Assembly: GCA_002269645.1 (NCBI GenBank)
Contig: NIVC01001231.1
Location: forward strand, 62,001 to 126,000
Length of the DNA: 64,000 bases
DNA from: Macrostomum lignano
Taxonomy: Eukaryota
Direction of reading: 5' to 3'
A program made the position numbers and the translations under genes. The notes beneath the pieces were generated by a model. That model saw only the letters and a list, made by a program, of their open reading frames with translations. It had not been told where the DNA came from and made no database searches. Positions 1 to 61,579 of this stretch are shown one piece after another (position 1 is the stretch's first letter; every line of letters starts with the position of its first letter).

Positions 1-3672
<3,672 letters not shown>

Positions 3673-10158: not shown

Positions 10159-11131
10159 GCTGCGCCTGTATTTGCTGCTTGCTCGCGACACTGCAAGGGC
10201 TTGGAACTCAACTATATAGCCTTATTGTATTCAATAAGCTTTCACCTGCCTGTCAGCGCAACCACCAGCGCAGCAGAGAAGGGAAATTGCAAAAAAAGAG
10301 ACGCTGGGTTGGCCTTTTGTTGCCGTTGGCGATCTCCTTCCTATAAATTTTATTCTTCTTTTGCACCGGGAATCCGTGCCTGTGCCTGTGCCGTGCGTCT
10401 GGCCAAGCGCTAAATGCGCAGTCTGAGACGAGCGGAGACACTTGAGAAGAATGGATCGTCTGAGAGGGGAGCTTTTCTATGCACTTGGCCTCCAGGCAGG
10501 TCCGGACTTGCAACCCCCCTCTGTGCCAGGAGTATAAGCTCACTCACCCGCTTTCTCTGTCTCTGAGTTTGCTCTGATGGATACAAAAGAAACACACAAG
10601 GTAAGAGAGAGAGAAGACTCTAAACACTTTTTCGCCGGTGCCTAACTCGCTTACAGACTGAAGCAGTCCTCCTTCTCGTGTCGAAATGTCGCCAACTCAT
10701 GGCAGTTTAACCAGCAAGGGGACATTGCTCAGTGTAGTTAAATGAGTACTGGCGCCACTTGATGCACTGCAGGACCACAAGCAAGCAATCCAAGCTAGTT
10801 ATTTGTGCAAACAGTTTTGCATCGCCCTACTACTGACAGTAATATAAAACACTCCCAGAGCTATACCGCACAATACTCAGGTTGGCATGCCTACGCCAAT
10901 TCAAAATGAATTTAAGGCAAGCACCGGGCTGCAGCTCCAGTATTGAATTTTAAGTGTGTTGGTCACAACTCGTGTGCAGCGGCTATTGAAGAGTCTGCTT
11001 TAATCAAATATACCAACAAATGGCGCAGAGATCCATACAGAGCATCACCAGCATGCTATTGAAATTATCAGACAGCTGAGAACTCGGGCTTCGTGAAAGT
11101 GAGTTGTTGTTAATATTCTACGGTAGAATGC

Positions 11132-23671: not shown

Positions 23672-23694
23672 TCAACTGGAGAAGAAGACGAAAG

Positions 23695-24420
23695 ACCTTT
23701 GCCTCACCGACCAATCAGAGAGTAGCTAACCTTTGCCTCACCGACCAATCAGAGTCGCTAACCTTTGCCTGACCGACCAATAAGAGGGTCGCTAACCTTT
23801 GCCTCACCGACCAATCAGAGAGTAGCTAACCTTTGCCTCACCGACCAATCAGAGTCGCTAACCTTTGCCTCACCGACCAATCAGAGAGCCGCTAACCTTT
23901 GCCTCACCGACCAATCAGAGGGTCGCTAACCTTTGCCTCACCGACCAATCAGAGAGTAGCTAACCTTTGCCTTACCGACCAATCAGAGGGTCGCTAACCT
24001 TTGCCTCACCGACCAATCAGAGAGTCGCTAACCTTTGCCTCACCGACTAATCAGAAAGTCGCTAACCATTGCCTCACCGACTAATCAGAAAGTCGCTAAC
24101 CTTTGCCTCACCGACTAATCAGAAAGTCGCTAACCTTTGCCTCACCGACCAATCAGAGGGTCGCTAACCTTTGCCTCACCGACCAATCAGAGAGTAGCTA
24201 ACCTTTGCCTTACCGACCAATCAGAGGGTCGCTAACCTTTGCCTCACCGACCAATCAGAGAGTCGCTAACCTTTGCCTCACCGACTAATCAGAAAAGTCG
24301 CTAACCTTTGCCTCACCGACTAATCCGAAAGTCGCTAACCTTTGCCTCACCGACTAATCAGAAAGTCGCTAACCTTTGCCTCACCGACTAATCGGAAAGT
24401 CGCTAACCTTTGCCTCACCG
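23695..24420. repeat. 32-34-bp minisatellite carrying CCAAT boxes immediately upstream of LIG4
   Basis: About 21 copies of GCTAACCTTTGCCTCACCGACCAATCAGAGAGTC; distal copies have ACTAATC. Confidence 0.95.
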
Positions 24421-24595
24421 ACCTGACAGCCACAGAGTGCATGAAGGTTTCTCTCTGACCAGCCACAGAGTGCATGAAGGTTTCTACCTGACCAGCCACA
24501 GAGTGCATGAAGGTTTCTACCTGACCAGCCACAGAGTGCATGAAGGTTTCTACCTGACCAGCCACAGAGTGCTTAAAGGTTTCTACCTGACCAAC
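24421..24595. repeat. 33-bp tandem repeat (ACCTGACCAGCCACAGAGTGCATGAAGGTTTCT) x5
   Basis: Five copies abutting the CCAAT array. Confidence 0.9.
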
Positions 24596-24949
24596 CAAAG
24601 TCCCTGAAATTTTCGCCCTTAATCAATGATAAACACTGTTTGGAAACTCAAATTGAAATTAGAACACAAGTCAAACAGACAGAATTTCCAGTCCAATAAA
24701 TGCGATCCACATCTAACAGCATGGTCGCCACTCAATCCTTTTTTATTTGCGATTCATTTTCAATAAAGAGTTGATTTTTTCTTAACATTCAATGGAATAA
24801 ACCAATAACAGCTGGCAGCATCTTGAAGCGAATTGATGGAGCAACCTGACAAAGGAACGCTGGCGAAAACAGGTCACTGCTAAGCCGGCCAAACACAATG
24901 TCACTAACAAGACACCCAATATCCGTCAGGCCATCGCAATCAAAAAAGT

Positions 24950-27721: not shown

Positions 27722-29023
27722 CCGGGTGTCCGGATTGAACGGAAACGCTGCTTAAAACGTCGTTAATTACGTAATCTTTCGCAAAATTCAAAATTTTGCA
27801 CGGGTGTCAGAACCAGCAGAAATCACAGAATTTAATACTTCCACTCTTGCAGCTTTATTCCTAACCATGGCTGAGCACGAGGCTCAAAGACGAGCAATCG
27901 CTGAATTACTTTGTGCTGGAAAGTCAACTAGCGACATCAGAGAAGTGCTCAATGTGAGCAGAAAGAGGATTTTCACTGTGAGGAAGCTGCTGAATGACAC
28001 AGGAGATGTCACCAAAAGACATGGGGGTGGTCATCCGAGGACAAAAAGGACAAAGAAGACCGTCGCAGCCGTTCGGGCGAAGGTCAACCGAAATCCCCGA
28101 AGGTCGATTTGCCAACTGGCACGTGAGCACGACATGAGCAAGACAACAATGTCGGAGCTCGTCAAAGAAGACCTTGGCATGGTGTCCAGGGCGGTGGTGC
28201 CGAAGAACCTCATCACTTCGAAGCAGAAGGTGTCGCGTCTCAAGCGGTGCAGGCAGTTGCTCACGTGGGTGAAGAACCACGGCTCGCTGGTGCGCGTGTT
28301 CAGCGACGAGAAACTGTTCACCTGTGACCAAGCCGTGAACAGGCGCAACACTCGCTACATCAACGCCGCCAGCAGCGCAGACACACCTGCCCACGTGAAG
28401 TACAGTATGAAGTCTAAGCACCCGGCCTCCATCATGATGCTGGGCGTCATTGCGAGCAATGGACGGAGGTGTCCCCCCATTTTCATCAACCCAGGCACCA
28501 AAGTGAATGCTGCATGCTACCAGCAGCTGCTGCAGCAGCACGTGCTGCCTTGGCTGCGTCAGCAGTACCCTGATGGACAGTACGTGTGGCAGCAGGATGG
28601 TGCTCCGGCTCACATAGCGGCCACAACCCAGCAGTTCTTGGCGGACAACATGGCGAACTTCTGGCCGAAGACGATGTGGCCGCCCTCCAGTCTGGACCTG
28701 AATCCGCTGGACTTCTCAATCTGGCAGCGTGTGGAGAGCGAGGCCTGCAGATCCTGCCACAGCAGTGTGGAAGCGCTGCAGGCTGCTGTTCGGCTGGCCT
28801 GGGAGAGAATGGACACCAACTATGTGAGGAAGGTGTGCCAGCAGTTCAGGAAGAGGCTGGAGCGCGTGATCGCGGCCAATGGCGGCCATTTTGAATGAGA
28901 ACAATGCTGACACCTTCCTATTTACTATTGTCAAAAATAAATGGTACAGCTGCTTGTCTTGCTGAGAAATTGCAAAAAATATTCAAAAAATCAGCAGCAT
29001 TTCCATTCAATCTGGACACCCAG
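27722..29023 (+). mobile_element. Tc1/mariner superfamily DD37D (maT) DNA transposon, 1302 bp, full-length
   Basis: 31-bp TIRs CCGGGTGTCCGGATTGAACGGAAACGCTGCT (27/31 identical) and TA target duplication (27720-21, 29024-25). Confidence 0.92.
27867..28898 (+). CDS. DD37D/maT transposase, 343 aa
   Basis: Uninterrupted ORF with N-terminal HTH and catalytic motifs FSDEK, QQDGAPAH, SLDLNPLD; 37 residues between the second and third Asp (counted). The canonical SPDLNP is changed to SLDLNP. Confidence 0.92.
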   Translation: MAEHEAQRRAIAELLCAGKSTSDIREVLNVSRKRIFTVRKLLNDTGDVTKRHGGGHPRTKRTKKTVAAVRAKVNRNPRRSICQLAREHDMSKTTMSELVKEDLGMVSRAVVPKNLITSKQKVSRLKRCRQLLTWVKNHGSLVRVFSDEKLFTCDQAVNRRNTRYINAASSADTPAHVKYSMKSKHPASIMMLGVIASNGRRCPPIFINPGTKVNAACYQQLLQQHVLPWLRQQYPDGQYVWQQDGAPAHIAATTQQFLADNMANFWPKTMWPPSSLDLNPLDFSIWQRVESEACRSCHSSVEALQAAVRLAWERMDTNYVRKVCQQFRKRLERVIAANGGHFE

Positions 29024-33842: not shown

Positions 33843-34270
<428 letters not shown>

Positions 34271-34683: not shown

Positions 34684-36870
34684 TCAATGGTTTCCTGGCT
34701 GAGACTTAAACTTATTGGGAGCCAGGAGGCTCTGTAAATTTCGTTGCCGTGTAAATGCGGGCAGTATGCGGGAGCCTGGTTTATTTTGTAGCTTCTCAAA
34801 GTTTTTAGCTATCTCGTTGGCAAGCCAGACCGTAGATGGGTGAAAAGGAAGGACCAGTGGGATGGGTCGGAGATGATTGTCAACCCTGATGTTCGTACCT
34901 GGCGGTTTGCCAGTCCCCAGTTTTTTAATCCAGATTGGTTCCCTTAGTTCGATTTTGTAGTTATTAAGAACTTGTTCGATAGCAATGGAGACAAAGTTTG
35001 CAATCGAGTGATTGGGGGTGAGAAAGTGCTCTGACCCCGAAGTCACGACCCTCCTGTTAATATTTGACCTGTGTTGGTTCATTCTATCTCTCTTTGTTCT
35101 TCTAGTCATCCCTACATAGAAGATTTTCCCAGGGTGGCACTGGTTGAAGGAGATGCCAAAGATGATGCTCTTGGAGCCACAGGACAGGCTCTGAGAGATT
35201 AAAAAACCAGAAGCCGGTTTCAGCCCCTGGGCGGAGAGAGCAGGCGGTGAGTGAGTGCAGCATTTGCAGCGGGATGACCCACAGGGATGGAACCCTTTGG
35301 GAAGCAGACCCAGATTGGTCGTTGGTCCCGCAGTCCAGTTCATAAGTTTGAGGACCTCCTTTTTGCAGTTTCTAATAAAAATCTTCAAGTAGCCTAATTG
35401 CTTGAGTTCCGATTTTAAAGAATTGAAAGCATCGTTGAAAGACTTGTAGTCATCACAGATACAGGCGTACCGAAGGACTTGGGATTTTACTACCCCCTTG
35501 AAGGTGTGTGACGGATGGAAGGACTGTCGGTGCAACAATCTATGAGTGTCTGTTTCTTTTGAAAACAGTTGTGTAGTGAAGCGGTTTTCAGCTTTCTTGA
35601 TGGTCCTGTCAAGGAAACTGACCTCAGTTGATGAGGAGCTGACGGTGAGTTTGATGTTGGGGTTGATTGAATTTAGGTGTCGAACAAATTCTGTCAGAGC
35701 TTCAGCCGGGTGGTTCCAGTGAATGAATATATTATCTATGTACCTAAAGTAAATTTTCGGCTTATAAAGAGCTGTTCTCAGGGCAGTTTCCTCCCAGAGG
35801 CTCATGAACAGACAGGCATAGCTGGGCGCAAATTTGCGCCCCATGGCTGTACCTCTAAGTTGTAGGAAGATCATTTTGTCAAATTCAAAGTCATTCCTGT
35901 ACAAACACAGTTCCAGTAGCTTTATTATTTTAGCATCCGGTCTAATGGGATCCGGGTATCGGTTAAAGAATTCCTGGATCGCTGCAATGCCCTGGTCTAT
36001 GGGGATCATGGAGTATAGACTCTGGGCATCACAGGTTGCCAGAGTCGAACCTTCCGTGCAGCTTTTATCCATAAGGTGTGCCTTGAAGTCATACGAGTCC
36101 TTAACGAAAGTGGGTTGCGCTTGGGCAATCGGTTTAAGAAAGAAGTCTATGTACTTTTCTGCCCCAATTGCTTCAGAACTGCATCCGCTAACAATAGGTC
36201 TGCCTGCTGGGACCCGAAAGGGGATCAGCCAGGTGGCCGGGTCCTTGTGAATTTTGGGGAGCAGGTAGAAATGCCGGGGACGGAAGTTCTCTCCGGGACA
36301 AAGAAAAGAAAACTGTTTCTTAGATATGAACTTTCTGTTACATAAATCGAGGAAGATCCTCCTGATAAGTTCCGCAGTCTCGGGTTGCAGTGGCTGGTCC
36401 AGCTGTTGATAGGCATTAGTGTCCAGCAATTGGTTGTAGGCTGCGAATTCGTAATCCTTGGGGTGCATGATGACCACTGCGTTACCTTTGTCCGCCTTTT
36501 TTATTAGGACGGAGCTGTTTCGCTTGAGCCCCTAAATCGCTCTGGTCTCTGGTACCTCTAGGTTGCCTTTGATCTGTACCGTTGTCAAATTATCTACCAG
36601 TTTTTTGTTCTCAAGCACAAACAAGTTGCACTCATCCCTTCTAAGTCTGCGGGGGACCTCCTTCCCTGATTTCCCGGTGAAAGGGGGCGGGCTGGTATTG
36701 GCGAGACCCCTCTTTTTGAAAAAGTCTTTCCAGAAAAGTTTACGATGAAATTCCGTCACGCAGTTCCTCAGATCCTCGAAATCAAGGGCTTGGGTTGGGA
36801 TAAAATTGAGTCCCCTATCTAGCAGCCTCGTCTCAGATTCAGAGAGTTTGAAGGTGGGGTGTAGATTCAA
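34684..36870 (-). pseudogene. Penelope RT-GIY-YIG polyprotein, inactivated
   Basis: LLDRGLNFIP, KKADKGNAVVIM, FYLLPKIHK, GRPIVS, GTAMGRKFAPSYA; YIDN in place of YxDD; Cys linker PCGSSRCKCC; IIFGI..FYVGMT..R..QH. One in-frame TAG at 36532-36534 splits the two ORF-track ORFs, which are in the same frame. Confidence 0.9.
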
Positions 36871-37289: not shown

Positions 37290-37342
<53 letters not shown>

Positions 37343-37347
37343 AAGAG

Positions 37348-37378
<31 letters not shown>

Positions 37379-37403
37379 GAGTGAGAAAGAGAGAAAGAGA
37401 GAA

Positions 37404-37443
<40 letters not shown>

Positions 37444-37444
37444 C

Positions 37445-37475
<31 letters not shown>

Positions 37476-37501
37476 CGAGAGAGAGAGAGAGAGAGAGAAA
37501 G
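37287..37501. repeat. (GA)n/(GAAA) microsatellite, 5' flank of the Penelope element
   Basis: About 215 bp of AG repeat. Confidence 0.98.
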
Positions 37502-38156
37502 CTGAGCCACAAGCCTTGAGCGGGCCGAATTCAAAGGACCCGAGGGCCGGAGTTTGCCGACCCCTGTCCTACAGATACATGTCACTATAATTGTGCTCAA
37601 GGTCACTCACCTTTGTCAAATTCGAAAAGCAAGCGCAAGTTTTTCCATGGATGAAGGAATCATATTATTCATGCCAAAAGAGTATGGATATTGCTTAGAG
37701 ATACATGTAGAGTGCCAATAAAACCGAAAAGTTAAAGCCAATTTTCGAGCTTCCACCCACACCGTCCGGTAACCGAGGATGTACGAGGCCCAATATGTCT
37801 GTGGCTCAATACTCGCCCAATTCAAAGTCTCTTTTGTTACATTTCACGCTTGAAACGTACACGAGCTCATATATTCACCAAAAATCACCTCACGAAAAAC
37901 GTCATTGATGAGAAACTGCTACTTTATTAGGATCAGCGTGTTATAGATTGAATAGAGATGAAACTCTAGGAATGATAGAGCAGTTCAGAGCCGAATTTCG
38001 ATTGGTCGACCAGTGTTTGGTGGTATGTTTCACTTTTTTAAATGAATGTAGAATGCATGCAGCCAAATTTTGGCATGGACCGAGCATACTGCAGACGAAA
38101 CTCCACTTTAATGATCAATTAGCCGATATCAAAAGCTCATTGAAGGTATTTTGAAA

Positions 38157-41100
38157 ATGAAGTTTCTGTCGGGAATACTCGTCAATATTTTTGCGATTGC
38201 GATAGCGATGGTCGCTGTCGAGCCGCTTGAATTCGAGGAGGCGTCCAGCAGTGACGAAATGATCTGGAATCTGCTGCAGCTAGGCAGAAAATACAATAAA
38301 GCTGTTCGGCCGCCGCCAGATTACAACACAACCAATGTGGTCTACATCAACTTTATTGTTGTCAAGCTGCTAGGAATTGTGAGTTATAATGAACTATTAA
38401 ATACCTTTGAATTTACACAAAGTGAAACAAGTCCTTTTCCTGATTTCTCGCTTGATTTTGCCTTACAAAAATTCTTTAGATGTAGTTTTATTACTTTGTC
38501 TATCAGAATTACATGCTCCACCCACTCGTCGCAACCGGGCCCTCACGCCTACGCACTAAATTTTGACGGCTTTGCGATTCTACGCAAAGATTAATGTAAA
38601 GATTAATGCTTAGATTAATGTAAGATCGTATTATAGGCAAAGATTTAGAGTGAAAGAGCTGTCTGTGTGCAGAGCGGCGTTGGTACCACTTGACCAAATT
38701 AGACTGACGAGACGTCTATGGGAGAACTTCCAAATTTTGGACTAAATAAAGTTCTTTCCATTCATACCCTTTTACGCACTGGTTGATTAATTACCAACGC
38801 TGACTCAGTTTTCATCATGGCTTTATAAAATAGGATTTCAATCGATTGATAACTGGTGGGCCATCTGCGATTTTTAACCATAGATTTTTTACCAAGGCGT
38901 TATAAAATTGGCCCCAGTGGACACGCAACGTTCAAAGTTATATTTTTGCACAAAATATAGGACTGTTCATAAGACAACGATTCAGCTTTGGAGCCGTCAC
39001 CAGACGTTTGTCTGATGTCCTAAAAAGTCTATGGTGAATGGGCATTTCTCAACTTACGTCAACTAATGCCGACGTACCGAAAACTTAATATATAGATTTT
39101 GCAAATTCCAAAAAAATTGTTTTCTCGTCGTCTTTGGTGCTTTTTCATGACGTCTGCTGTACGTCGGCTTAACGTATAACTACTCATTTCTATAACGAGA
39201 GTCCGTTGCAGGACGTCAGAAACGTCTGGAGCTGACGTCGCTTTATAGACGAGCACGAGCTGAAAGATCGCTTTACAAAGCCGAATCTCTTATCAATATT
39301 TAGTTCAAAAATATAACTTTGAACGTGTGTATCCACAGGTGAGGTGGTCGTGGCTACGTGTCTACAGCAGATAAATATTTGTTTGTAGATTGCGTGGCTT
39401 CTGCTCCGTAGAGCATTCTGGCGTTCGTCCGATGTTTCAGATGTCTATTGTCTGTTGTATAACGTCGGATGCGTCGGTGGAATCCGGATAGAGGAAATAT
39501 TTTATTGGCACCAATTTAGACCATAAATTATAAGAAGCCAACTGATAAAGTCAGTAAATGGCACTACAGATGCAAGGCAACCCATAGCAATTCTCTCAGA
39601 AACTTCGAGCTCGAAATTGCATGTAAAACAATTGGTATACAATTTCGATACCACAATTATTTTAATTGCTTTTCCCCAATAGCTAAAATGGTTATACCGC
39701 TCTATTTCAGAACGAAGTTGCTCAGCACATGTCGCTGGAAGGCTTTACCGAAATGGTAAGTGGAACAATTTATTGCGCCCAGCTCGACTAATAGCCTGCA
39801 CAAACACGCAGAGCTTCCACCATGCTTCAGATTTCAAATTGCTCACATCCGTGCGCCGAACTTTAACCAGCGTCACCGAACTATGCTGCCTATTTGGGTG
39901 GATTAGGGATTGTCTGAAGCTCATGAAAGCTGCACCCCTTCGATAAACATTACCGCAGGAATGGAACGACTACCGTCTAGCCTGGTACGACAGATACAAT
40001 GGAACGTTCAACCACATAACGGTCATCTATTTGCCGCGATCTTCCATCTGGATACCCGATGTGATCACGATAAACACGTGAGATGGGCTCTAGAATCTAC
40101 TTTAATAATAACAATTATAACACTTCTTTAGTTTCGTCGAGTGAGCAGTTAATTGAAGACATCGGAATTGACCGAGCAAGTATTTGTTTTGGTCCGAGGT
40201 TGACTCACAGGTGAAGGATAACTAATTTTTGAAAAATATGTCCTCAAAAAGGAATTAGCAATCATTATCAGCCATTTGCGCATTAATTCCGTGAACCGGG
40301 TTTTCGTGAATTCGGTTTTGCCTTGCTTGACACTCAGAAGTCCTGTAGCCAGTAGGTGAGCTATCGGAATTTTAGCATTTGAAAGCAATCAGAGAACTGT
40401 GTATCCAACTTTACCTGTAATCCGATTTGCAGCGAAAACAGGCATTTAATACGTGAAAATCGTGATTTACGAGTGTAGCTAGCATACTTTTACTTTGATT
40501 GCCCATTGCGCCATCGTATAATGCAATAATTACAGTTGATGCTCAACCAATAACCAATAACTTCGATTCAAGAGTCGAGCACAAAGAGTCAACTCAGCCG
40601 TTGTCCGCCATTGTGCTGGCCGACGGTCGCGTTTTCACCAGTTCGCCGTTCAATACGCGAACCCTGTGCGACATCAACATGCTGTACTTCCCGTTCGACA
40701 CCCAGGTCTGCAGAGTGGTGTTCGGCAGCTGGCTGATGGTCAGGGCGGACCTGGAGCTCCGGGTGCTCAACAAGAACGCATCATCGGTTCTGGCACCGGA
40801 CACTCTTCGTCAGCAGAACATCGAGAGTGATGAATACTGCATAACAAAGAGCGACTTCTGGGTGACACCAGTAACCGATCTCGGCGCATGCCAGGAGGCA
40901 GTTTTCACAATCGTCATTCAGGTAGGGCATCAGTCAGCACCAATTCTAATGATACTTATGAGCTCGGATTTGCTCAGATGAACATGGACTCGGAGCAGTT
41001 CCAACAGATATCGGCATGAATCTCATTTTAGCGAAAGCCGCTCTTCTACGTGATGAACCTCATCATGCCGAGCTTCCTGATCCTCATCATCTGCGCGTTC

Positions 41101-42003
41101 AGCTTCTTCCTGCCGCCAGACACTGGCGACCGGCTGTCGTTAAACATCACCTTGATGCTCACGCTCATGGTGTTCATGCAGATTGTGGCTGGATACACGC
41201 CCGCTCAGAGCGACAGTGTGCCAATGCTCAGTGAGTACCAGAAACTGTGGATTAAGGGTCAAAACTTTGAGAAACGTTTGCCGAGATCCTTCAAAATTAT
41301 TCGACGTTAAGCAGATTCGAAACTGCATTATCGACCTCACTACTTCCGACCGTTTTAGTAGTACCATGTAATAATTGCTTTCTTTCCCTTTGCAGCCAGA
41401 TTCTTTGCCATAGTTGTCGCCATTTCGGCCGTGTCAACGCTGGGCAGCGTGTTCCAGCTGTACTGCTGCTACAGGGGCCACGAGGCGAGGTCGTCATCCG
41501 GCCCGATGCGAACTGCTCAAGCCGCGTGCTGCTCCTGCCGAGCCGGACGAGACAGAAAAAATAACACTGATTCGGCCAGAGGGACTGAAGAAGAAGTAAT
41601 TGTGAGTTCAGAATGGACGAATGACTTAATTAATATGTTTCTTGGTGTACCTGTTGTGCACACTGATTGAAAGTGCTAGAAACCAGAAAATCTCTCACCT
41701 CGGGCCTCTAGTAGATTTGTTGCATTTGTTAGATTTTTTAGTTCTGTAGCGTCCCGTTATTTAGTTGCTCACAGGGACACAAGTAGAAGTTTTTTAGTAG
41801 CCAGAGAGGTCACCACAGCTACACTCTCCCCGCACTCTCTACAGCAGCCACACGCCGACGCTTCACAGGCTGCGGGCGAAAACCTTTGGCTGGTCATTGG
41901 ACGCAGACTCGACTGGATTCTATTCGTTGCCATGGTAACAGCAATATCGTCGCTAGTCGTGTTCATCTGCCATTTTCGAAATCCAGACTATCTGGCCTGT
42001 TAA
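38157..42003 (+). CDS. Cys-loop ligand-gated ion channel subunit (nAChR-like, non-alpha, predicted cation-selective), ~450 aa
   Basis: Exons 38157-38378, 39711-39755, 39959-40077, candidate microexon 40433-40452, 40536-40921, 41032-41230, 41396-41601, 41845-42003. Signal peptide, VRP, WNDYRLAW, WIPD, Cys-loop CDINMLYFPFDTQVC, RKPLFY, M2 PPDTGDRLSLNITLMLT, M4 WLVIGRRLDW. Confidence 0.88.
38913..39339. mobile_element. MITE-like element in channel intron 1
   Basis: About 35-bp imperfect TIRs sharing ACGTTCAAAGTTATATTTTTG. Confidence 0.55.
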
Positions 42004-42846
42004 ATATTTGGGCTTTGAGGCTGCTCGTTTCTATGGAAGCACCTAACTTCTATTCGACAAAAGCACTTCCTTGTAACATCTTTAATCGAATTGAAATAAC
42101 GTTTAAATAAAACTGACTCGCCTATAATTACTATATGAGATAGAAACGGTTTATGCTTCATTTTCAATGCCTAAACTACAGGTCTGTGACCTAAACTCTA
42201 ACCAAAGCCCCAAACCTAATGCCTTTAACGTATTTTTAGTCAAGCAAATTTCATTTCTTTTGAATTTCTTTGGAAACAAGGCTCGGTTAATCGGGGGTCT
42301 GGATGTCTTTCTTGCTCTGCATCCCAGCTTCTCTTCCCGTATCCTGTATCTCCCATGTCTTTCTATCTCTCAGGAACATAAGAATAAACTCTACACCAAA
42401 TGATAAGATGTCACTTATTCCCATCTCAAAGCTAAACTCCCTGCTTTGCTCCTGTAGTTTTTTGTCGATTTGATGTCGCGAAAGAATCGTCTGGGAAACA
42501 ACTTCACGAATCTGGTGAGCTGGTGCTGAGCTGGTGCTAAGCTGCACCCACGAATACCGCTGAAATGGGAAACAACGGAAGTGAAGCCGCTCTCCACGAA
42601 GAATAGCTTTTTTTAAAGACAATGCCGTCAATACAGAAAGTAGCAGAAAGCATCAAAACAGTGACTCCGGGTCACCCGCGTGGCATTCCCGGCTCAGCGT
42701 ATCCTGACTGACATCCTGCCTGCGGAATTTTCTATTTTTTCGATTATCGATTTCTGCCGTATATATCAGGAAGAGTTTCAGTCTCTGGGAGTCGATGCGC
42801 GAGAGTCAATGTCATTGTGAAAGCAGAAAGTCTGTTCGGCCAAAAA

Positions 42847-43876
42847 ATGAAGCTCGATTTCGGCAAGATTTTCTACCTACTCTGTCAACTCGCTCTCGCA
42901 TCTGCCGACAAGTCGCAGAACCTCACCGGCTGCGGCCCGGACCCGAGCTACAAGCTGGCCGTCAACACGACGTACTGCGTGGGGCCCGAGTCTACAACTG
43001 CGGTGTCCGCCTGCGCCGCCATGGCCGCCTGCGCCAAGCTGGGGGAGAGTCTGCTCGGTCCAGCCGCTTACAATTCGTTGCGGAACTCCAAGATGACCAA
43101 GGACGCCTGGCTGGGCATCACGGATGCCGCTGTGGAGCGCGGCTCGAGTCCATCCGGTTGGCAACTTGTACCGGGATTGGAGCAGCTGGAGAACTTGGAG
43201 CTCTGGTCGGTTGAACAGCCGAATGGCGAGGGCGAGGATCTGGATTGCGTGATCCACGTCGCCAAGGAGAACGGCCTGCACAACTACGAATGCAACGGAA
43301 CCAAGCACTACCGATGCCAGAGGCCTGCTGGAGTCGATGCGGCTACTTTGACACCAAAAAGGTGGGAGCTACTTACGAATGACTAATTTTGGAAGTCATA
43401 AAACATTCGCACCAACCCGCTATGCACTGCAAGGTAAAATTAGGGAAGCAATCGTAGCAACAGGTAAACATAGACCATGGGCTAACGGTACAATGCATTT
43501 GGTAGAAATTTTGTAGTCCCAAAAGTCCTCGGAAAATACACAGTATGATTTGATGCAATCTATGCAAACTACCGAGACCATTGCAAACTGCCACTTATAC
43601 TGCAACAGCTACCAGCGGTTTTTCGACGCCCCAGTGCTGACTTTCGCCCAAGACGCTCCCGGTTGCAACATCAAATCTGCAACGGCAGCCACCGCCATGC
43701 TCTGCGGTCTGAGCTGCTCAGAGAAGTTCGGATGTGTCGGCTTCTACCACAACGCTATTAGACAAGAGTGCCGTCTCCTGCTGTTCTTCGACGCGGCTCT
43801 GAAGCTGGACTATGATTCGGAGGCTGAAGAAGTCGCCTGGACGAAGATGCTGGCTTTTCCTCGGCCAAGCAATTGA
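42847..43876 (+). CDS. Secreted C-type lectin + PAN/Apple-like domain protein (260 aa), paralog 1
   Basis: Exons 42847-43361 and 43609-43876 (phase 2). Signal peptide; CTL motifs AWLGITD, WSVEQPNG, DCV, LHNYEC; PAN-like CGLSCSEKFGCVGF...ECRL. Confidence 0.85.
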
Positions 43877-48505: not shown

Positions 48506-49929
48506 GTGCCTGCTCAGTCAGCCTCGGACACGCATTTTGCTTTTACATTCATTACTCAAAGCCAACCTGTGGTTCCCAGGCAACCAACTGGGTTGGTAAA
48601 TTGGTAAATTGAAAACAAAAAGTTAGGAGAAATTCAAGTGTCGCTCATTCAGTCAACGATCCAAGGGCATAAGTTAGAGTGCAGAAGAGCTCCTAAGTGT
48701 ATTGAAGATCTTCACTGTTCTTGGATTTTTCAGAAGCTCTTGTTAAATATTTCAGAACCACTTAAAGAAGAAAAGTAATGCAGGTAGGGCTGATGAGAAT
48801 TTCTAATTCTACGAAGTATGCTTCAGATTCACCTTTGGAGCAATTTTCATTGAAATATTCTCTAAGAAATCCATTCTCACTCAGTTTTGTTGTCCATTGA
48901 TTGCATTCAAACGCGGTGTTGGGTTGCAGACACAAACGCTTCTATTTCTGAATGCAAGTTTAGCATTATCGGCATGAGATGTGAGGACACGACGATATCT
49001 CAGCTGCGAGAGGTGGTGTGGAGCTCAAAAACATCTGTCCTACTCAACGGTGCCAAGGCCGGCTCAATGGTTGCACATGTATTCCATGCTCCATGAGTGG
49101 TGCAATGGGAACTCAGCCAGTGAACTAACTAGTCCAGGCCGCGTGATTCTGATATGGCTGTTAATTTATAAAAGTGACCTGATGCGGTTGGAAGGCATTC
49201 GAGTCTTCGCGGATTTGACGCACGTCTTTTGCAATTTGGTTAGTACTGCATGACGACTGTTAAAAACTTGGTTGGCCAAAATTCAAGCAATGCATCATAT
49301 CAAACCCTTCTTACTATCCATAAGTAGTAATATACGCTTGATAAAAATGTAACAGCTTTGACTGCATTTCAACGCATCATTCTTAGCAAATAAACTCCGG
49401 CACTCTTGATCCTGCGGTTGCTACTCAAGGATTAATCTCGCAGTTGAATTCTTGATCCATGCGTCTCAAGGGTCACAGCAGTCCCCAAGCCAATTTTGCT
49501 GGTGTTTTCATTCATTTGTTGTCCCTTCTGGCTTTCTGATGCCCAGGGGCATTGAGGGGGCAGAGAAATTCGAATAGGACCAAAGTTTCTGGTGCTCCAT
49601 TTGAAATTTTCTAACCTTGTAAGAATAAATTTTCCAATGCGTATGACTTGCGGTCGGATTAATTAAACCCGTGGCATGTATCGGACTTGCGCCGTATTTC
49701 TGCGGAAATATACTTTACAAAACGTGAGTAAACTGAGACGGAGAAGCACTAGGTTTCTCAATGGCGTAGTCTTCCTTCACTCGAGACATTGGGATATGTA
49801 TATTTCGGGCGCGTCATTTCGAATCTTCTTGACTTTAATGTTCTTTCTTTGGGTCTAGTAGTGTTCAGAGTTATCATTTGAGTGCGCTGTTTCTCATGAA
49901 CATTTTGGGTTATTTAGAAATGCTCATTT

Positions 49930-50811
49930 CTAAAACAGCAGCGGGTCGTATCGCTTCCGGAAAAGAAGCGGGTCGTATCGCTTCCGGAAAAGCAACGGGT
50001 CGTATCGCTTCATAGACAGCAGTGGGTCGAACCTCTTCATGGACAGCAGTGGGTCGAACCTCTTCATGGACAGCAGTGGGTCGAACCTCTTCATGGAAAG
50101 CAGTGGGTCGAACCTCTTCATGGACAGCAGTGGGTCGAACCTCTTCATGGACAGCAGTGGGTCGAACCTCTTCATGGACAGCAGTGGGTCGAACCTCTTC
50201 ATAGACAGCAGTGGGTCGAACCTCTTCGTGGATAGCAGTGGGTCAAACTTCTTTGTCTTTGATAAACTGGACTTATCGGAGTGGTGTCGAGCACCATATT
50301 CTTTCGGAGCCTGCGGTGTGCAAGAAAAAAAACAGTCCATTAATATTTATTATGAGAAGTAGTAAATAAAAGCTACTGAGGGAAGAGCACATCGGTGCTC
50401 AGACCCGATCTCATGCGAAATCCGAGTCCAATCAATCCGCCGAGAAGCAGATCGATGGTCAAACTGAATGGAGCTGCAACAGCGGCAGCTGAGCCGTGAC
50501 TACTGATAAGCCGATGGAAGGAAATTTAAACCCTACCGTCGCTCCCCAACGCCCAACGGACCACGCAGTGGGAGCTAGCTGGGGAGCGCTCTTCAGAATA
50601 TCGACCCTTCGGGGGATCCCATCGACCCTCGAGATGAGTCCCCAAGACGCTCCACTATAATCACTACCAACCGAAGCAATTAATTTTTTCGCTCTGACGG
50701 TTCAGGGTCGCAGAGTAAAATTGAGCAATGAAAATTGAAGCGCCGTACCGCGAAGGCTTCACTGGCAGCCAGGCTGCCGATCAGAAGGCACCAAAGTAGC
50801 GATCTGCCCAT
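49930..50811 (-). CDS. Neuropeptide precursor, 147 aa, 12 (F/Y)DPLL peptides
   Basis: Exon 50811-50749 (GCCATGG context; MGRSLLWCLLIGSLAASEAFA|GTACGG) joins in phase 0 to exon 50310-49930 (TTTTTTCTTGCACACCGCAG acceptor). It encodes KK-FDPLLST, 8x KR-FDPLLSM, 2x KR-YDPLLFR and KR-YDPLLF*. Repeat units differ at synonymous sites. Confidence 0.9.
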
Positions 50812-53930: not shown

Positions 53931-55839
53931 GCTATATGTTTATAGAGGCTGGAAATTTAATTTGCCTAAAGCGTAAAAATTAATTACAAGGCCAAATCTC
54001 TTTAAAACTGCAGATGAGTTTGTCGCATCAAGTAAAACAAGCCTTCAGTGTAGCCTGTGAAGCACATTAGACAAAGTCGCGGTAACTTTATCCCATTATA
54101 AAAGCTGTAATAACAACGCGAGACAGCTAGGCATCCAACATCTGCCTGGCTCGATGCCTTAAATAATAAATCTTTAATAATGCCAAGATTCCGAATGCAA
54201 AGCAACGGAGAGGGAAAACTGATCCGAGTTTGATCATGACTAGAAAATAGATTTTCCCACGCCTGCATTAAGGCTTCTTGCTTGATGAAAGAATTTGAGC
54301 TTGAGAACTAAAGACTTGTTGAGGCCTTCTTCGACACAGACCAAATGAAATTCAAGTCAATGGGAAATGCATAATCCAACCTCAATTTTTGTGTTCTACA
54401 CTGTTTAGTGATCGATTTTTAAATTGAATCTCGCTTCCAGTTTTCCTGTTATTAGGATAGCGGGAATAAAAGCAACTGCATAGGAAACTTTGCCAACATT
54501 TCTCATCAAAGTTTCATGCCACAAACGATGATCCGGTTTCATTCTTCGTATGAGGGAGCACGGAAACAGAAGACCGTCAACTCGGCTGTTACACTTCATG
54601 GCCACCCTGCTAAATAAAACAAGGCAAACTATTTCTCTGTAAGGTAGTTCTGCCACGCTAGAGTGCCGAACTATATACTTTGTTCATGACCCGGTAATAT
54701 TTACTGCTCCTGCAATATTATGCAGGGCGACTTTATTGCTGTACTGCACACTGCGGCTTCATGACGCCTCTCCTGTCTGCCTTCATCTGTTCTACCGCGC
54801 TTTTATGTTCATACAATTTACGAGTTAATAACCTAATTGCCGCCGAATATACACTCAACAACATTGAAAAGTCGCCCCTCTATGAGCAATTCTAAAATAA
54901 AAGATACGAGAAAATTGAGGGGCAGCTTCAATCCGTCCAACCCTCGCACACCGCTCCCCCAACTTCATTCCTCAACTTAAGTCTGTCGCGCGGCGTAGCT
55001 AAGTTGCGTCCCTCGCAAGATTGAGAGACTTCACCTGCACTCACAAAAGTGGCGACCACAGACGGAATCTGCTGTGATGGCGACTTTTCGATGTTGCTGA
55101 GTATACACTTCAGCTCGTATAGACACTGCGTGGCCAATCCTTGACGGTTTTAGACCCCTATTTATTAGCCGAACTCAAAGAACCAAACCTTTAATAAATA
55201 CGCTGGTATTTCCTATTAGCAGAAATCAACACCACTTGTGTGTACTATTTCATTATCTGAAATAAATGAGCTACTTGAGCCGTACTACTTGACTATCTGA
55301 CAATCGCTCAACAATCTAACCCCCTTCCCCCCAACAATTCCCCCAGCCATCCCCCATGAGCCTTGATATCTCAACAATTTCCCCAGTAGGCCTTGATGGG
55401 ATCAGTTATACTCGAAGCAGTTTTTACAAATCAGTTTTTACAAGGGATTTGAGGGTCACGGCGTCAGTTTTCTTGTAAAATAACTAAGTCAGTTAAGAAC
55501 TAAGACTTAATTTTTTTCTGTTACAAAAATTCAGCTAATTTGGATCCAGCTTTTTTAAAGGATCGTCTTTTTACCTGCCGATTTACGTGATTTACGTGAT
55601 TACGTAACGGAGCCAGCCGACCATGGATGGGGTGCGAAGCTGGTGCAGAAGTGGACTGCGAGTCCGCTCGCAGTTAAAAATCGCAGCAGTTTCTTGTAAC
55701 GCAGTTATTGCGAAATCGCAGTTTCGCAGTTAAACCGCTCGCAGTTTCCCTTCGAAACAGCAGCATACAGTACTACTGTACACACTCTGTAGCCAGTGAG
55801 TACTTGCGGTCTGAGCTGTTACTAGAGACCGCAACAAAG

Positions 55840-56758
55840 GGGATGTCAACTTAAGCACCAGAATGGAGCCCGAAGTTCAGCTCCGGACCAAACCGACTAC
55901 AATCGATAACTTGTCGGCCCAGACGACTAGAATCGCCGAGACATCCCATCCGGCTCCCTTCCTTGGGGTCCCAGGGGATAAAGGGGATAAAATGGGGATC
56001 TCATGTCAACTTAAGGCTCTGGAATGGAGCCCGAAGTTCAGCTCCGGACCAAACCGACTGCAATCGATAACTTGTCGGCCCAGACGACTAGAATCGCCGA
56101 GACATCCCATCCGGCTCCCTTCCTTGGGGTCCCAGGGGATAAAGGGGATAAAATGCAGATCTCATGTCAACTTAAGGCTCTGGAATGGAGCCCGAAGTTC
56201 AGCTCCGGACCAAACCGACTGCAATCGATAACTTGTCGGCCCAGACGACTAGAATCGCCGAGACATCCCATCCGGCTCCCTTCCTTGGGGTCCCAGGGGA
56301 TAAAGGGGATAAAATGGGGATCTCATGTCAACTTAAGGCTCTGGAATGGAGCCCGAAGTTCAGCTCCGGACCAAACCGACTGCAATCGATAACTTGTCGG
56401 CCCAGACGACTAGAATCGCCGAGACATCCCATCCGGCTCCCTTCCTTGGGGTCCCAGGGGATAAAGGGGATAAAATGGGGATCTCATGTCAACTTAAGGC
56501 TCTGGAATGGAGCCCGAAGTTCAGCTCCGGACCAAACCGACTGCAATCGATAACTTGTCGGCCCAGACGACTAGAATCGCCGAGACATCCCATCCGGCTC
56601 CCTTCCTTGGGGTCCCAGGGGATAAAGGGGATAAAATGGGGATCTCATGTCAACTTAAGGCTCTGGAATGGAGCCCGAAGTTCAGCTCCGGACCAAACCG
56701 ACTGCAATCGATAACTTGTCGGCCCAGACGACTAGAATCACCGAGACATCCCATCCGG
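55840..56758 (+). repeat. 161-bp tandem array, left arm
   Basis: ORF-track starts spaced exactly 161 bp apart (55863, 56024, 56185, 56346, 56507). Confidence 0.97.
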
Positions 56759-57334
56759 GTCCGTCTCTTGCCGAAACTTCCAACACCCCCGGCGGCTCGG
56801 ATGTGTAACTCAAAGTCTCTCCAGGAGTCACCTTCGTAGCTACCGAGAACCTCCTTGACACGAATGTTTTGAATGTAATAATCGGCTTGATTTAGTTGAT
56901 ACGGACCCACCGAAACCTCTGACAAATTCACTGTATGAATTCGGGGGAACCCCGAGCTTTTTGGATCCAGCGGGTTGACAGCAATCCATGCCCTTGTGTT
57001 AGCAGGGGGGCACGCTTCAGATCACAGTTGAAGTGCAGCTGCTCAATTTCGTCCAGTTCGTTGGACAAGAGCACTCGGCGCATGAAATTCTGCCCGAATT
57101 CGAACAACGATAGCCCTGTCCATGACGGTGGCAGCTGTTTAAATGATTCAAAACCTGGATGCGCCCGGTTGTACTTTGCCATCGAGGTCTCGATAACAAC
57201 GTCTAATCGGCTGGGCTCACTGAAGCCGGCTGACGGCAGCCACTGATACGGTTTGTGCCTCTCGATAACACATTTGTCCTGCTTAATGGCAGCAAAGCAG
57301 CACTCAACGACAGAGCGGAACATAGTGGCACAGC
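56759..57334 (-). pseudogene. Fragment of a DDE_Tnp_4-type (Harbinger/ISL2EU-like) transposase C-terminal region
   Basis: RSVVECCFAAIKQ resembles the R..VE..F..LK motif carrying the catalytic Glu. After a 1-nt frameshift near 56930 comes SVGPYQLNQADYY. Family assignment is from memory. Confidence 0.5.
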
Positions 57335-59534
57335 GGATGTCTCGGCGATTCTAGTCGTCTGGGCCGACAAGTTATCGATTGCAGTCGGTTTGGTCCGGAG
57401 CTGAACTTCGGGCTCCATTCCAGAGCCTTAAGTTGACATGAGATCCCCATTTTATCCCCTTTATCCCCTGGGACCCCAAGGAAGGGAGCCGGATGGGATG
57501 TCTCGGCGATTCTAGTCGTCTGGGCCGACAAGTTATCGATTGCAGTCGGTTTGGTCCGGAGCTGAACTTCGGGCTCCATTCCAGAGCCTTAAGTTGACAT
57601 GAGATCCCCATTTTATCCCCTTTATCCCCTGGGACCCCAAGGAAGGGAGCCGGATGGGATGTCTCGGCGATTCTAGTCGTCTGGGCCGACAAGTTATCGA
57701 TTGCAGTCGGTTTGGTCCGGAGCTGAACTTCGGGCTCCATTCCAGAGCCTTAAGTTGACATGAGATCCCCATTTTATCCCCTTTATCCCCTGGGACCCCA
57801 AGGAAGGGAGCCGGATGGGATGTCTCGGCGATTCTAGTCGTCTGGGCCGACAAGTTATCGATTGCAGTCGGTTTGGTCCGGAGCTGAACTTCGGGCTCCA
57901 TTCCAGAGCCTTAAGTTGACATGAGATCCCCATTTTATCCCCTTTATCCCCTGGGACCCCAAGGAAGGGAGCCGGATGGGATGTCTCGGCGATTCTAGTC
58001 GTCTGGGCCGACAAGTTATCGATTGCAGTCGGTTTGGTCCGGAGCTGAACTTCGGGCTCCATTCCAGAGCCTTAAGTTGACATGAGATCTGCATTTTATC
58101 CCCTTTATCCCCTGGGACCCCAAGGAAGGGAGCCGGATGGGATGTCTCGGCGATTTTAGTCGTCTGGGCCGACAAGTTATCGATTGCAGTCGGTTTGGTC
58201 CGGAGCTGAACTTCGGGCTCCATTCCAGAGCCTTAAGTTGACATGAGATCCCCATTTTATCCCCTTTATCCCCTGGGACCCCAAGGAAGGGAGCCGGATG
58301 GGATGTCTCGGCGATTCTAGTCGTCTGGGCCGACAAGTTATCGATTGCAGTCGGTTTGGTCCGGAGCTGAACTTCGGGCTCCATTCCAGAGCCTTAAGTT
58401 GACATGAGATCCCCATTTTATCCCCTTTATCCCCTGGGACCCCAAGGAAGGGAGCCGGATGGGATGTCTCGGCGATTCTAGTCGTCTGGGCCGACAAGTT
58501 ATCGATTGCAGTCGGTTTGGTCCGGAGCTGAACTTCGGGCTCCATTCCAGAGCCTTAAGTTGACATGAGATCCCCATTTTATCCCCTTTATCCCCTGGGA
58601 CCCCAAGGAAGGGAGCCGGATGGGATGTCTCGGCGATTCTAGTCGTCTGGGCCGACAAGTTATCGATTGCAGTCGGTTTGGTCCGGAGCTGAACTTCGGG
58701 CTCCATTCCAGAGCCTTAAGTTGACATGAGATCCCCATTTTATCCCCTTTATCCCCTGGGACCCCAAGGAAGGGAGCCGGATGGGATGTCTCGGCGATTC
58801 TAGTCGTCTGGGCCGACAAGTTATCGATTGCAGTCGGTTTGGTCCGGAGCTGAACTTCGGGCTCCATTCCAGAGCCTTAAGTTGACATGAGATCTGCATT
58901 TTATCCCCTTTATCCCCTGGGACCCCAAGGAAGGGAGCCGGATGGGATGTCTCGGCGATTTTAGTCGTCTGGGCCGACAAGTTATCGATTGCAGTCGGTT
59001 TGGTCCGGAGCTGAACTTCGGGCTCCATTCCAGAGCCTTAAGTTGACATGAGATCCCCATTTTATCCCCTTTATCCCCTGGGACCCCAAGGAAGGGAGCC
59101 GGATGGGATGTCTCGGCGATTCTAGTCGTCTGGGCCGACAAGTTATCGATTGCAGTCGGTTTGGTCCGGAGCTGAACTTCGGGCTCCATTCCAGAGCCTT
59201 AAGTTGACATGAGATCCCCATTTTATCCCCTTTATCCCCTGGGACCCCAAGGAAGGGAGCCGGATGGGATGTCTCGGCGATTCTAGTCGTCTGGGCCGAC
59301 AAGTTATCGATTGCAGTCGGTTTGGTCCGGAGCTGAACTTCGGGCTCCATTCCAGAGCCTTAAGTTGACATGAGATCCCCATTTTATCCCCTTTATCCCC
59401 TGGGACCCCAAGGAAGGGAGCCGGATGGGATGTCTCGGCGATTCTAGTCGTCTGGGCCGACAAGTTATCGATTGCAGTCGGTTTGGTCCGGAGCTGAACT
59501 TCGGGCTCCATTCTGGTGCTTAAGTTGACATCCC
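57335..59534 (-). repeat. 161-bp tandem array, right arm (inverted), with 5-unit higher-order period
   Basis: 14 unit starts from 57418 to 59511; the variant pair recurs 805 bp apart. Confidence 0.97.
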
Positions 59535-61579
59535 GTTAAATAACATAATATGCAATCACTGAATCAGTCAATTCACTGCGTCCACCATCCATCACCATCA
59601 CCATTCAACAATCGCATTAGAAGTACAAATTTACGATTTACAACTTCACAACATAATCGCAGTTCGCAACAATAATAAGACGCCTTACATTTCATACAAA
59701 ACAGTTTGCAAAAACTACAAAAAACTACAAAAATTACAAAACAGAATGAGCAACGACGTACTCAGAGTAAGCAAACCCTCAAACAAATAACCCACCCCAA
59801 GCACTGACCCCAGAGCCCACAGTCCATAAACGATCAGAGTCAGTCAGAGTCCAACAAATTCATTCCTAGAAAACGATTTTACGATTCACACATTTCATTA
59901 TTTGGATAACTAAACGATAGTCTAAAAAATTGCATTGTGAAGTGAAGTGGAACTGAAAAATACATGATGAAAATTGAAAGTTGAAAATGTCTATATGTTC
60001 CATCTTATCAATCCCGAAAAATCCCTGGATTCACAGATTTTAATCCTGGGATCCCGTATCCCGGCCATGGATAATCCCGGGATTATCAATCCTGGTAAAT
60101 CCTGACAAATTTTAATCCTGGGATTCAAATCCCGGAATTTGGCCCCTTAATCCCACGATCCCGGGATTGCAAACCCTACGCGGAATATAAAATATTTGAA
60201 ATTTTAAAAAAGATAAAAATGATGTATTTAACGTTTGATATTGTACAACGTTGTCAAGCTAATTGATACTGACAAATTGCAAACCATAGTGGAGAAAACA
60301 CCTCACCCCATGATTTCGGAGTTAATATATCAATCAGAGGCAGTAATCCGTCCAAAGGTTTCAAGATCAACCTGTGCGACAGTTTCAAAGACAAAATACA
60401 GGGGGGATATGCGAGTGAAAGCCAAATTCCACAAGAAAGAACACTGTCATGATTTTTGGCAGTACGCAATTAATGCATTTCGTTCAGAAAATCTTCAAGC
60501 CGTCATCCCCAACCAAGATTGGCGCGATTCCTGGTAAAAAAATCAGAAGTGCAGGACTTGAACAAGTCTACTGAATACGTTGTTCATCGATAGCTCAAAT
60601 ATTTCATACAAATGCAAAAATGACTCACTTCAGGAACTTATTGAATAGTAGTTTGCGTAAATTGTTTTGCATTTTTATCACTAGCTATTCATCCCGTTAC
60701 TAACCGCACAAAAACTTACGTCATATTAAATTATTCCCAAACAAAAATTTTAACCTATTATTGTAGCAAGTTACGAAAAAGTGATCTTTTGTATCTTCTA
60801 GAGAGTTGTTTATTTGCGTTATAACTCACGACACATAGTGTTTTAATTTTTTTCTTTCGTCGAAATAGGGCACACTGCGTGCGTGCGCACAATTTGTCCT
60901 AGGTAATGTCTTACATTTAACGCCGGTTAGCCAACTGTTGTCTTGTGTTTTTTACTGTGTTTTGAAATTATGTTTTTCGTTTGTCATTTTTTTGCCAATA
61001 AAACAAGGGCTACTGGTAAAACAGCCCTATGCAAATATGCCTTTCTTGATTTTCTAGGCCTACTGTGTGGTGTGGGTTTTCTGAAAGATATTCAGGTACA
61101 GGTACATTCAAACCGATTGTCTTTAACTTTTAACAAAAATGACCTGCTTCAATCATCTTTTTAACAAATATCCACGCAATTATTTGGCGTCAAATGAGCT
61201 TTCATTTATCTACTAAACTGGGTTTTTTGTCAATCTTGATGACTTTATCCTCATCAATTACAATTACCCTAAAAATTCCTGGAAAAAAAGTTTTACAATG
61301 GTTGTTATAATTGTTGTAATATACTATAGAAAGAACAAAAAGCTTAAGCCTCTTCACATTACCAATTCCAGAACCAGAATCGGTTTGGATCTTCCAAGAA
61401 AAATAGCAGTAAAACTATTTGGCATAACTATGGTTTCGTTCGTTATATTATTTCTTGTTTTGAATTTGTTCCAGCGCATGTAGAAATGGCTCGTTAAATT
61501 ATTTTAAGTTCAAAAAAGATGACCCACCACCAAAAAAGTTCAAATTAGAGTTCGAAGTCACGAGAAAGATAATTAGACG

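Follow-up and report, generated by a model that had tools for sequence, protein, structure and literature searches.

Peptides of the flatworm FDP[I/L] family have been described from schistosomes and planarians. Collins et al. (2010) recognized the peptides of Sma-npp-26 and Sja-npp-26 (EHFDPIIY, SYFDPILF, NFDPILF, and others) as counterparts of planarian spp-15; Smed-spp-15 encodes eight copies of FDPIQFamide together with FDPIMFamide and is expressed in the cephalic ganglia and ventral nerve cords, spp-16 of the same species encodes the nonamidated QFDPIMY, and SPP-15 and SPP-16 peptides were confirmed by mass spectrometry (MS) (PMC2953531). The Sm-npp-26 peptides NFDPILF, SYFDPILF, SYFDPIIY, and EHFDPIIY are likewise nonamidated and were detected by MS as free acids (-OH) in cercariae (PMC9495596). 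NPP-26 labels a cluster of neurons in miracidia, with weak expression in the apical gland (PMC11349301). The peptide NFDPILF at 1 uM activates the receptor SmGPCR9 in a Gq bioluminescence resonance energy transfer (BRET) assay, whole-mount in situ hybridization (WISH) for Smnpp26 gives a punctate neuronal pattern, RNA interference (RNAi) leads to curling and lower motility, and NPP-26 is under study in schistosomes as a possible drug-target candidate (PMC13367911). Here, we analyzed a 64,000-nucleotide (nt) window of the Macrostomum lignano genome (contig NIVC01001231.1; record coordinates are window positions plus 62,000) in which an apparent 27-bp minisatellite, lying within positions 49930-50811 on the minus strand, most likely makes up the main exon of a small gene with two exons. 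We put at about 0.78 the probability that this gene encodes a 147-amino-acid (aa) prepropeptide belonging to the FDP[I/L] family.

Gene structure and predicted product

The coding part of exon 1 (50749..50811, minus strand; 63 nt) begins with an ATG at 50811 in the context GCCATGG and consists of 21 codons that translate as MGRSLLWCLLIGSLAASEAFA and end in phase 0. A predicted GT..AG intron of 438 nt (50311..50748), with the donor GTACGG directly after exonic GCG and a polypyrimidine tract and acceptor reading CTGTTTTTTTTCTTGCACACCGCAG at the exon boundary, would join it to exon 2 (49930..50310; 381 nt, phase 0), which closes with TAG at 49932-49930. The acceptor is similar to that of the RPS12 intron on the same contig (TTTTTCTACATTGCAG). 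Exon 2 opens with a 19-aa N-terminal spacer propeptide, APKEYGARHHSDKSSLSKT (50254..50310), and continues with 12 units of 27 nt: unit 1, KK-FDPLLST (50227..50253); units 2 to 9, eight near-identical copies of KR-FDPLLSM that differ by three synonymous third-position changes (50011..50226); and units 10 to 12, KR-YDPLLFR, KR-YDPLLFR, and KR-YDPLLF followed by TAG (49930..50010). A candidate polyadenylation signal, ATTAAA, was found as a motif match at 49834..49839 of the same strand, starting 91 nt past the final base of TAG (49930). Tandem Repeats Finder (TRF) splits the array into two period-27 rows, 49940-50011 and 49997-50253.

This exon/intron model had been predicted in the first-pass annotation, and its coordinates, phase, and peptide list were reproduced exactly when we retranslated the minus strand. 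Its description of each unit as KR plus a heptapeptide fits units 2 to 9 but not unit 1, which carries KK, or the last three, which consist of a hexapeptide plus R and thus form an RKR site. All 12 units conform to [KR][KR]-[FY]DPLL.., that is, to the family pattern of tandem 6- to 8-residue peptides with the core [F/Y]-D-P-[I/L] between dibasic flanks. The C-termini of the predicted mature peptides are aromatic in 3 of the 12 (YDPLLF) and Ser-Met or Ser-Thr in the other 9.

By heuristic signal-peptide criteria, the product of exon 1 has a suitable N-terminus, with R3 in the n-region, an uninterrupted h-region (LLWCLLIGSLAA), and A at -3 and -1; the predicted precursor, starting MGRSLLWCLLIGSLAASEAFA followed by AP, therefore has the form of a short (about 100 to 190 aa) secreted protein. 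When the definition was tightened post hoc to a basic n-region, an unbroken hydrophobic core, small residues at -1 and -3, and a GTR donor, exon 1 was the sole phase-0 mini-exon to qualify within the kilobase preceding exon 2; only 1.6% of shuffled 1-kb sequences contained such a mini-exon, and 0.1% did once a Kozak context was added. In the frame of exon 2, the open reading frame (ORF) contains a single Met, at 50340 (MDCFFSC...), which is closely preceded by two stop codons and followed by no hydrophobic core; secretion therefore requires an upstream exon. A single-exon model starting from Met 50340 was rejected as the functional form because it lacks a signal peptide. M. lignano uses spliced-leader trans-splicing, and the possibility that a trans-spliced leader brings in the ATG, joining at the 50311/50310 acceptor, was considered as well; the resulting product would also not be secreted.

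In the processing that we infer, from transcription and splicing through signal-peptide cleavage and convertase cleavage to cell type and receptor, the 21-aa signal peptide would route the product to the secretory pathway and be removed cotranslationally, an enzyme of the prohormone convertase type would cleave after each KK or KR site, and a carboxypeptidase would remove the basic residues, among them the extra Arg at each RKR site. Such processing would release eight copies of FDPLLSM, one of FDPLLST, three of YDPLLF (YDPLLFR if the extra Arg stays), and one spacer peptide. Since no Gly precedes any of the cleavage sites, the peptides would keep free C-termini, as do those of Sm-NPP-26 and Smed-SPP-16. 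By analogy with NPP-26, they may be secreted from neurons or from other peptidergic or gland cells and may act on a rhodopsin-type G protein-coupled receptor (GPCR); the label "neuro" would be applied to them by homology only.

Relatives in Macrostomum and other flatworms

We searched for the predicted product in a word-indexed collection of 5.8 billion protein clusters and, exhaustively with HMMER, in 1.84 billion representatives, collections that include both M. lignano sets found among the matches (the BOX15_ proteins of NCBI and the A0A1I8... entries of UniProt); neither search returned an identical or near-identical protein. The word-indexed search yielded three M. lignano proteins and nothing else: A0A1I8FZM5 (FDPLYGM), A0A1I8HH48 (FDPLIM(R)), and PAA57848.1 (FDPLMM). 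HMMER gave 213 matches, the best 150 of which were screened for short secreted precursors containing FDP[LIMV] at dibasic spacing. Most of the inspected matches among these 150 proved to be translations of 9-aa tandem repeats from outside the family and were discarded by inspection; the filter left five proteins, namely the three M. lignano paralogues, CAH8441873.1 of Schistosoma turkestanicum, and one environmental YFDPIMY precursor. The host, M. lignano, is itself a member of the Platyhelminthes; positions 14950-35873 of the window are 100.000% identical over 20,924 nt to contig NIVC01001231.1 of assembly GCA_002269645.1.

The S. turkestanicum protein encodes NFDPILF, SYFDPIIY, and SYFDPILF, which match or nearly match published NPP-26 peptides, and it was recovered with a repeat-inflated HMMER E value of 3.3e-7. 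The first-pass annotation had noted a likeness of YDPLLF to peptides of the NPP-26/SPP-15 type and had proposed an alignment to flatworm precursors; the likeness agrees with the literature (PMC9495596, PMC2953531), and pairwise BLASTP aligned the predicted product with CAH8441873.1 (P0210) over its full length, including the signal peptide (E=5e-15), and with Smed-SPP-16 (E=7e-5), both values again being inflated by the repeats. The environmental precursor is encoded on a 904-nt intronless contig (JGI 3300030603, Ga0210253_10362022), probably a transcript, as a 186-aa protein with a signal peptide and 10 units of KR-YFDPIMY or KR-YFDPILY; it is likely a member of the family from a free-living flatworm, near planarian SPP-16. 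A metagenome scan for close relatives gave 122 pattern matches, none of which was confirmed. The product is also absent from assemblies of sequencing runs, which is probably uninformative, since short-k-mer assemblies would be expected to fail to span a near-identical 27-nt array.

Compared with NPP-26 of Schistosoma (Sm-npp-26, Smp_071050; CAH8441873.1), the predicted precursor is similarly short and secreted, with tandem KR-flanked 6- to 8-mers around the core [F/Y]DP[I/L]x[F/Y], and free C-termini are predicted here just as the NPP-26 peptides are nonamidated. YDPLLF equals (N)FDPILF at four of six positions, and the other two differ conservatively. The differences are that position 4 is Ile in NPP-26 and Leu in this gene, that most NPP-26 peptides carry one or two additional N-terminal residues (N, SY, or EH), that all of them end in F or Y whereas 9 of the 12 peptides here are FDPLLS[M/T], and that NPP-26 units are diverse whereas the 27-nt array is nearly uniform. 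For NPP-26, moreover, neuronal expression, MS detection, an RNAi phenotype, and the candidate receptor SmGPCR9 have been reported, whereas the present gene is known from sequence. SPP-15 of Schmidtea mediterranea comes near to this gene in overall architecture and copy number, with a signal peptide, a short spacer, and about nine tandem KR-flanked FDPIxF hexapeptides of which the last is a variant; it differs in having Gly before KR, and hence amidated peptides, where this gene has no Gly and no amidation is predicted, and in having Ile and Gln or Met at positions 4 and 5 instead of Leu-Leu. SPP-16 of the same planarian (QFDPIMY, pQFDPIMYGKLRQFY), classed among the "miscellaneous nonamidated peptides," shares with this gene the release of a nonamidated FDPIxY peptide by KR cleavage, but it has only four copies, set apart by long spacers, and its peptide begins with Gln (pyroGlu) and ends with Tyr.

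The three M. lignano paralogues share with this gene the species, the FDPL core, and a C-terminal Met, and FDPLYGM of A0A1I8FZM5 is a heptapeptide like FDPLLSM. They are nevertheless only 47 to 64% identical to it, with different signal peptides, spacers, and loci, and they lack units of the YDPLLF type; this gene alone joins Met-ending heptapeptides to aromatic-ending hexapeptides. It is a fourth FDPL locus in M. lignano and is in none of the protein sets searched. Met-ending peptides (FDPLYGM, FDPLIM, and FDPLMM) were seen only in the M. lignano paralogues, which is consistent with the earlier suggestion that FDPLLSM could be lineage specific. FDPLLSM, FDPLLST, and YDPLLF(R) were absent from the literature searched, although M. 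lignano FDPL peptides may have been described earlier; nor were FDPLIM, FDPLMM, or FDPLYGM found there, and two matches to YDPLL came from unrelated papers.

The paralogue BOX15_Mlig023240g1, whose product is PAA57848.1, has the same architecture as the present gene, with a signal-peptide exon, a phase-0 GT..AG intron, and a single exon of K[KR]-FDPLx(x)M repeats. Its exon 1 has 27 codons and ends in GAG before the donor GTGCGT, the intron is about 370 nt long, and the acceptor reads CTCTCCAG up to the boundary. This shared architecture, with an intron at the same place and in the same phase, is the best available support for the splice predicted here. The repeats are also similar as DNA, with a 24-nt unit AAGAAGTTCGACCCGCTGATGATG (AAGAGGTTCGACCCGCTG...) in the paralogue and a 27-nt unit AAGAGGTTCGACCCACTGCTGTCCATG in this gene. 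The paralogue's locus (NIVC01002440.1, positions 10001-10872 of the extracted stretch; its neighbor is CNOT1) does not translate to its annotated product: the 95-aa protein has 5 FDPLMM units, compared with 16 in the genomic exon, and the repeats have evidently been collapsed in the transcript or in the annotation.

The peptide-signaling repertoire of M. lignano, a flatworm used as a laboratory model, rests on gene sets in which tandem-repeat genes are evidently missing or truncated. The earlier warning that repeat masking would erase this gene is plausible, in that TRF covers 49940-50253 of the 49930-50310 exon and no identical or near-identical protein was found in the collections searched; the locus provides an example of how masking repeats ahead of gene finding can lose multicopy neuropeptide genes. 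The gene links the FDPL...M peptides of Macrostomum to the NPP-26 and SPP-15/16 peptides of schistosomes and planarians, and a free-living, transgenic-amenable relative with both types of ligand could aid receptor deorphanization and structure-activity work. The current understanding of the FDP[I/L] family itself is left as it was.

Constraint on the repeat and alternative explanations

The window contains 17 tandem arrays, and the claim that this one is unlike the others was borne out: only the 27-bp array can be read in a frame that is free of stops and places a dibasic site in each unit, with 12 sites over 11.6 copies, and no dibasic site occurs in any stop-free frame of the remaining arrays. 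In the frame of the gene, codons depart from the majority unit by 15 synonymous and 11 nonsynonymous differences, compared with 0 to 7 synonymous and 19 to 27 nonsynonymous in the five other frames. Within the KRxDPLL core, seven of the nine distinct variant codons are synonymous (AGG/CGA, TTC/TTT, CCA/CCG, and CTG/TTG/CTT/CTA), the remaining two being R>K and F>Y, where about 25% would be expected to be synonymous (binomial P of about 0.0015). Units 10 to 12 use codons unlike those of units 2 to 9 (CGA for Arg, CCG for Pro, and TTG or CTT for Leu) and retain K-R-x-D-P-L-L. This synonymous bias, which includes differences between the old YDPLLF units and the young ones, indicates constraint on the protein. 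The first-pass annotation had pointed to the FDPLLSM units, and their three differences (TCT twice and CTT once) are indeed all synonymous and at third positions; taken by themselves they are weak evidence (P of 0.013 to 0.055), because the units are near identical and probably were recently amplified or homogenized.

That last point weighs against our interpretation of the locus, as do several others. The GTACGG donor is of only moderate strength. A laxer test for a signal-peptide mini-exon, easily passed by chance, was satisfied by 47% of shuffled 1-kb sequences and was dropped as nondiscriminating in favor of the stricter post hoc one described above. In the BLASTP alignment, exon 1 (MGRSLLWCLLIGSLAAS) pairs with the S. 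turkestanicum signal peptide IGR-LFYCLL-GSLAIS, but this likeness is supportive and not independent proof, because in a tblastn search of the whole window with the Schistosoma signal peptide exon 1 was only the second-best match and was not significant (E=0.67). The repeat structure inflates HMMER and BLAST E values to the point that unrelated repeat proteins score as well. Expression of the gene is a prediction, and the lack of a self-match in the protein sets could reflect low or no expression and not an artifact of masking. Finally, whether FDPLLSM and FDPLLST would act on a receptor of the NPP-26 type is uncertain, since Ser-Met or Ser-Thr terminates 9 of the 12 peptides and the described members of the family all have aromatic ends; we have provisionally treated these nonaromatic endings as a lineage variant and not as the failure of a defining feature.

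These reservations bear differently on the other ways in which the locus might be explained. An open frame is not evidence by itself, because a 107-aa ORF on the plus strand (50039-50362), which matches no protein on record, is also open across the array; in a window with many minisatellites, and given how readily a lax mini-exon test is satisfied, one could suppose that the array is a noncoding minisatellite that has its open frame, its dibasic spacing, and an ATG exon upstream by coincidence. We regard this as extremely unlikely, since dibasic sites in every unit distinguish this array from all the others, the synonymous bias is confined to one frame, the FDP[LI] motif recurs in four other flatworm precursors as well as in published peptides, and a paralogue has the identical gene architecture. 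Quite improbable in our assessment, too, is that the gene looks intact but is silent or decaying, a young FDPL duplicate left by the genome duplications of M. lignano. Two observations would fit such a history: the searched collections, including two M. lignano annotations, hold no identical or near-identical protein even though a 95-aa paralogue is annotated, and at least one other place in the assembly carries a duplicate of the region, roughly 94% identical as seen over its RPS12/ligase part. Absence from the annotation is nevertheless weak evidence, because repeat genes of this family are misannotated (5 units in place of 16 in the paralogue); and a decaying copy accords poorly with an ORF that is intact over two exons with canonical splice sites and 12 units free of frameshifts, or with a synonymous bias that extends to the comparison of old YDPLLF and young units.

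A different kind of doubt concerns not whether the precursor is made but where it is used. Neither cleavage at dibasic sites nor a signal peptide is peculiar to neurons, and the characterized neuropeptides end in an aromatic residue that 9 of the 12 peptides here (FDPLLSM/T) do not have, so the product could be a convertase-processed secreted precursor of gland, epidermal, or reproductive cells whose peptides act locally or outside the animal. They might serve, for instance, as an antimicrobial, as a pheromone, or as part of the seminal fluid or the secretion of adhesive glands. We consider this unlikely: the characterized relatives are all mainly neuronal (spp-15 in the cephalic ganglia and nerve cords, Smnpp26 with its punctate neuronal WISH pattern and neuron clusters), and short, uncharged, hydrophobic 6- to 7-mers are typical of GPCR ligands and not of antimicrobial or structural peptides. 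On balance, we take the locus to be a real and probably functional gene for the predicted prepropeptide of the FDP[I/L] family.

Array evolution and other features of the window

Within the precursor, YDPLLF units of the type found in other flatworms adjoin amplified FDPLLSM units that lack a C-terminal aromatic residue. The near identity of units 2 to 9 indicates that this block arose by recent expansion, or was homogenized, through unequal exchange; the TCT variants sit at both ends of the eight-unit block. The YDPLLF units, the codons of which differ throughout, are older and are of all units the nearest to the peptide form in other flatworms. We tentatively speculate that M. lignano has an expanded and largely misannotated FDPL family of at least four loci, in which the present locus represents ligand diversification within one precursor; if so, the receptor for FDPLLSM may be a separate one specific to the lineage, and individuals, as well as duplicated copies of the genome, may differ in how many copies of FDPLLSM they carry.

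Signs of such duplication were found elsewhere in the window. A search with the DNA ligase exon gave no close match. An RPS12 exon is 100% identical to M. lignano BOX15_Mlig011213g1, and the RPS12 and DNA ligase region on NIVC01001230.1 is about 94% identical to positions 14950-35873, with different minisatellite copy numbers; a third contig of the assembly encodes an identical RPS12. These near-identical copies fit a duplicated M. lignano genome. In the DNA ligase gene (16161-24600), whose annotated product on NIVC01001230.1 has the Pfam domains DNA_ligase_A_N/M/C, coding ORFs alternate with long minisatellites that differ between almost every pair: 17214-18328 (26 bp, 46 copies), 18934-19658 (30 and 34 bp), 20244-21655 (33 bp, 43 copies), 22023-23026 (21 bp, 48 copies), and 23695-24597 (34 and 33 bp). 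The introns of this gene appear to be filled by unrelated tandem arrays.

Scans of the window with Rfam and for tRNA genes found nothing. Two ORFs resemble those of mobile elements. The intact 364-aa ORF at 27804-28898 (plus strand), for which no gene is called in the public annotation, has helix-turn-helix (HTH) and DDE_3 transposase matches, all below the Pfam curated cutoffs, and looks like a Tc1/mariner-type element. The 597-aa ORF at 34684-36477 (minus strand) has no Pfam match at E<=0.01; by eye it looks retroelement-like, and a Penelope-like element is suggested by the motif FYVGMT...R..H, which resembles GIY-YIG, together with the region around YIDNIF, which resembles reverse transcriptase (RT). 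Arrays of (AG)n and AG-rich sequence lie on either side of this ORF (33843-34269 and 37290-37498). On the plus strand, the region 38151-43386 contains an exon for a Cys-loop receptor ligand-binding domain at 40499-40981 (Neur_chan_LBD, E=1e-14) and, at 42817-43386, an ORF for a predicted secreted C-type-lectin-like protein (Lectin_C, E=0.009, below the cutoff), neither of which was matched to a protein on record. Exons of a MARK/Par-1-type protein kinase lie on the minus strand at 74-625 and 3331-3669 (region 74-3669), and a 10/20-bp array at 2556-3306, presumably in the intron that separates these two exons, is open in all three minus-strand frames. Finally, 161-bp satellite arrays at 55837-56770 and 57335-59537 (5.7 and 13.7 copies, 98 to 99% matches) are inverted relative to each other and form a large, near-perfect palindrome with arms that are 99% complementary around a spacer of about 565 nt; ORFs of 122 aa run mechanically through their units.

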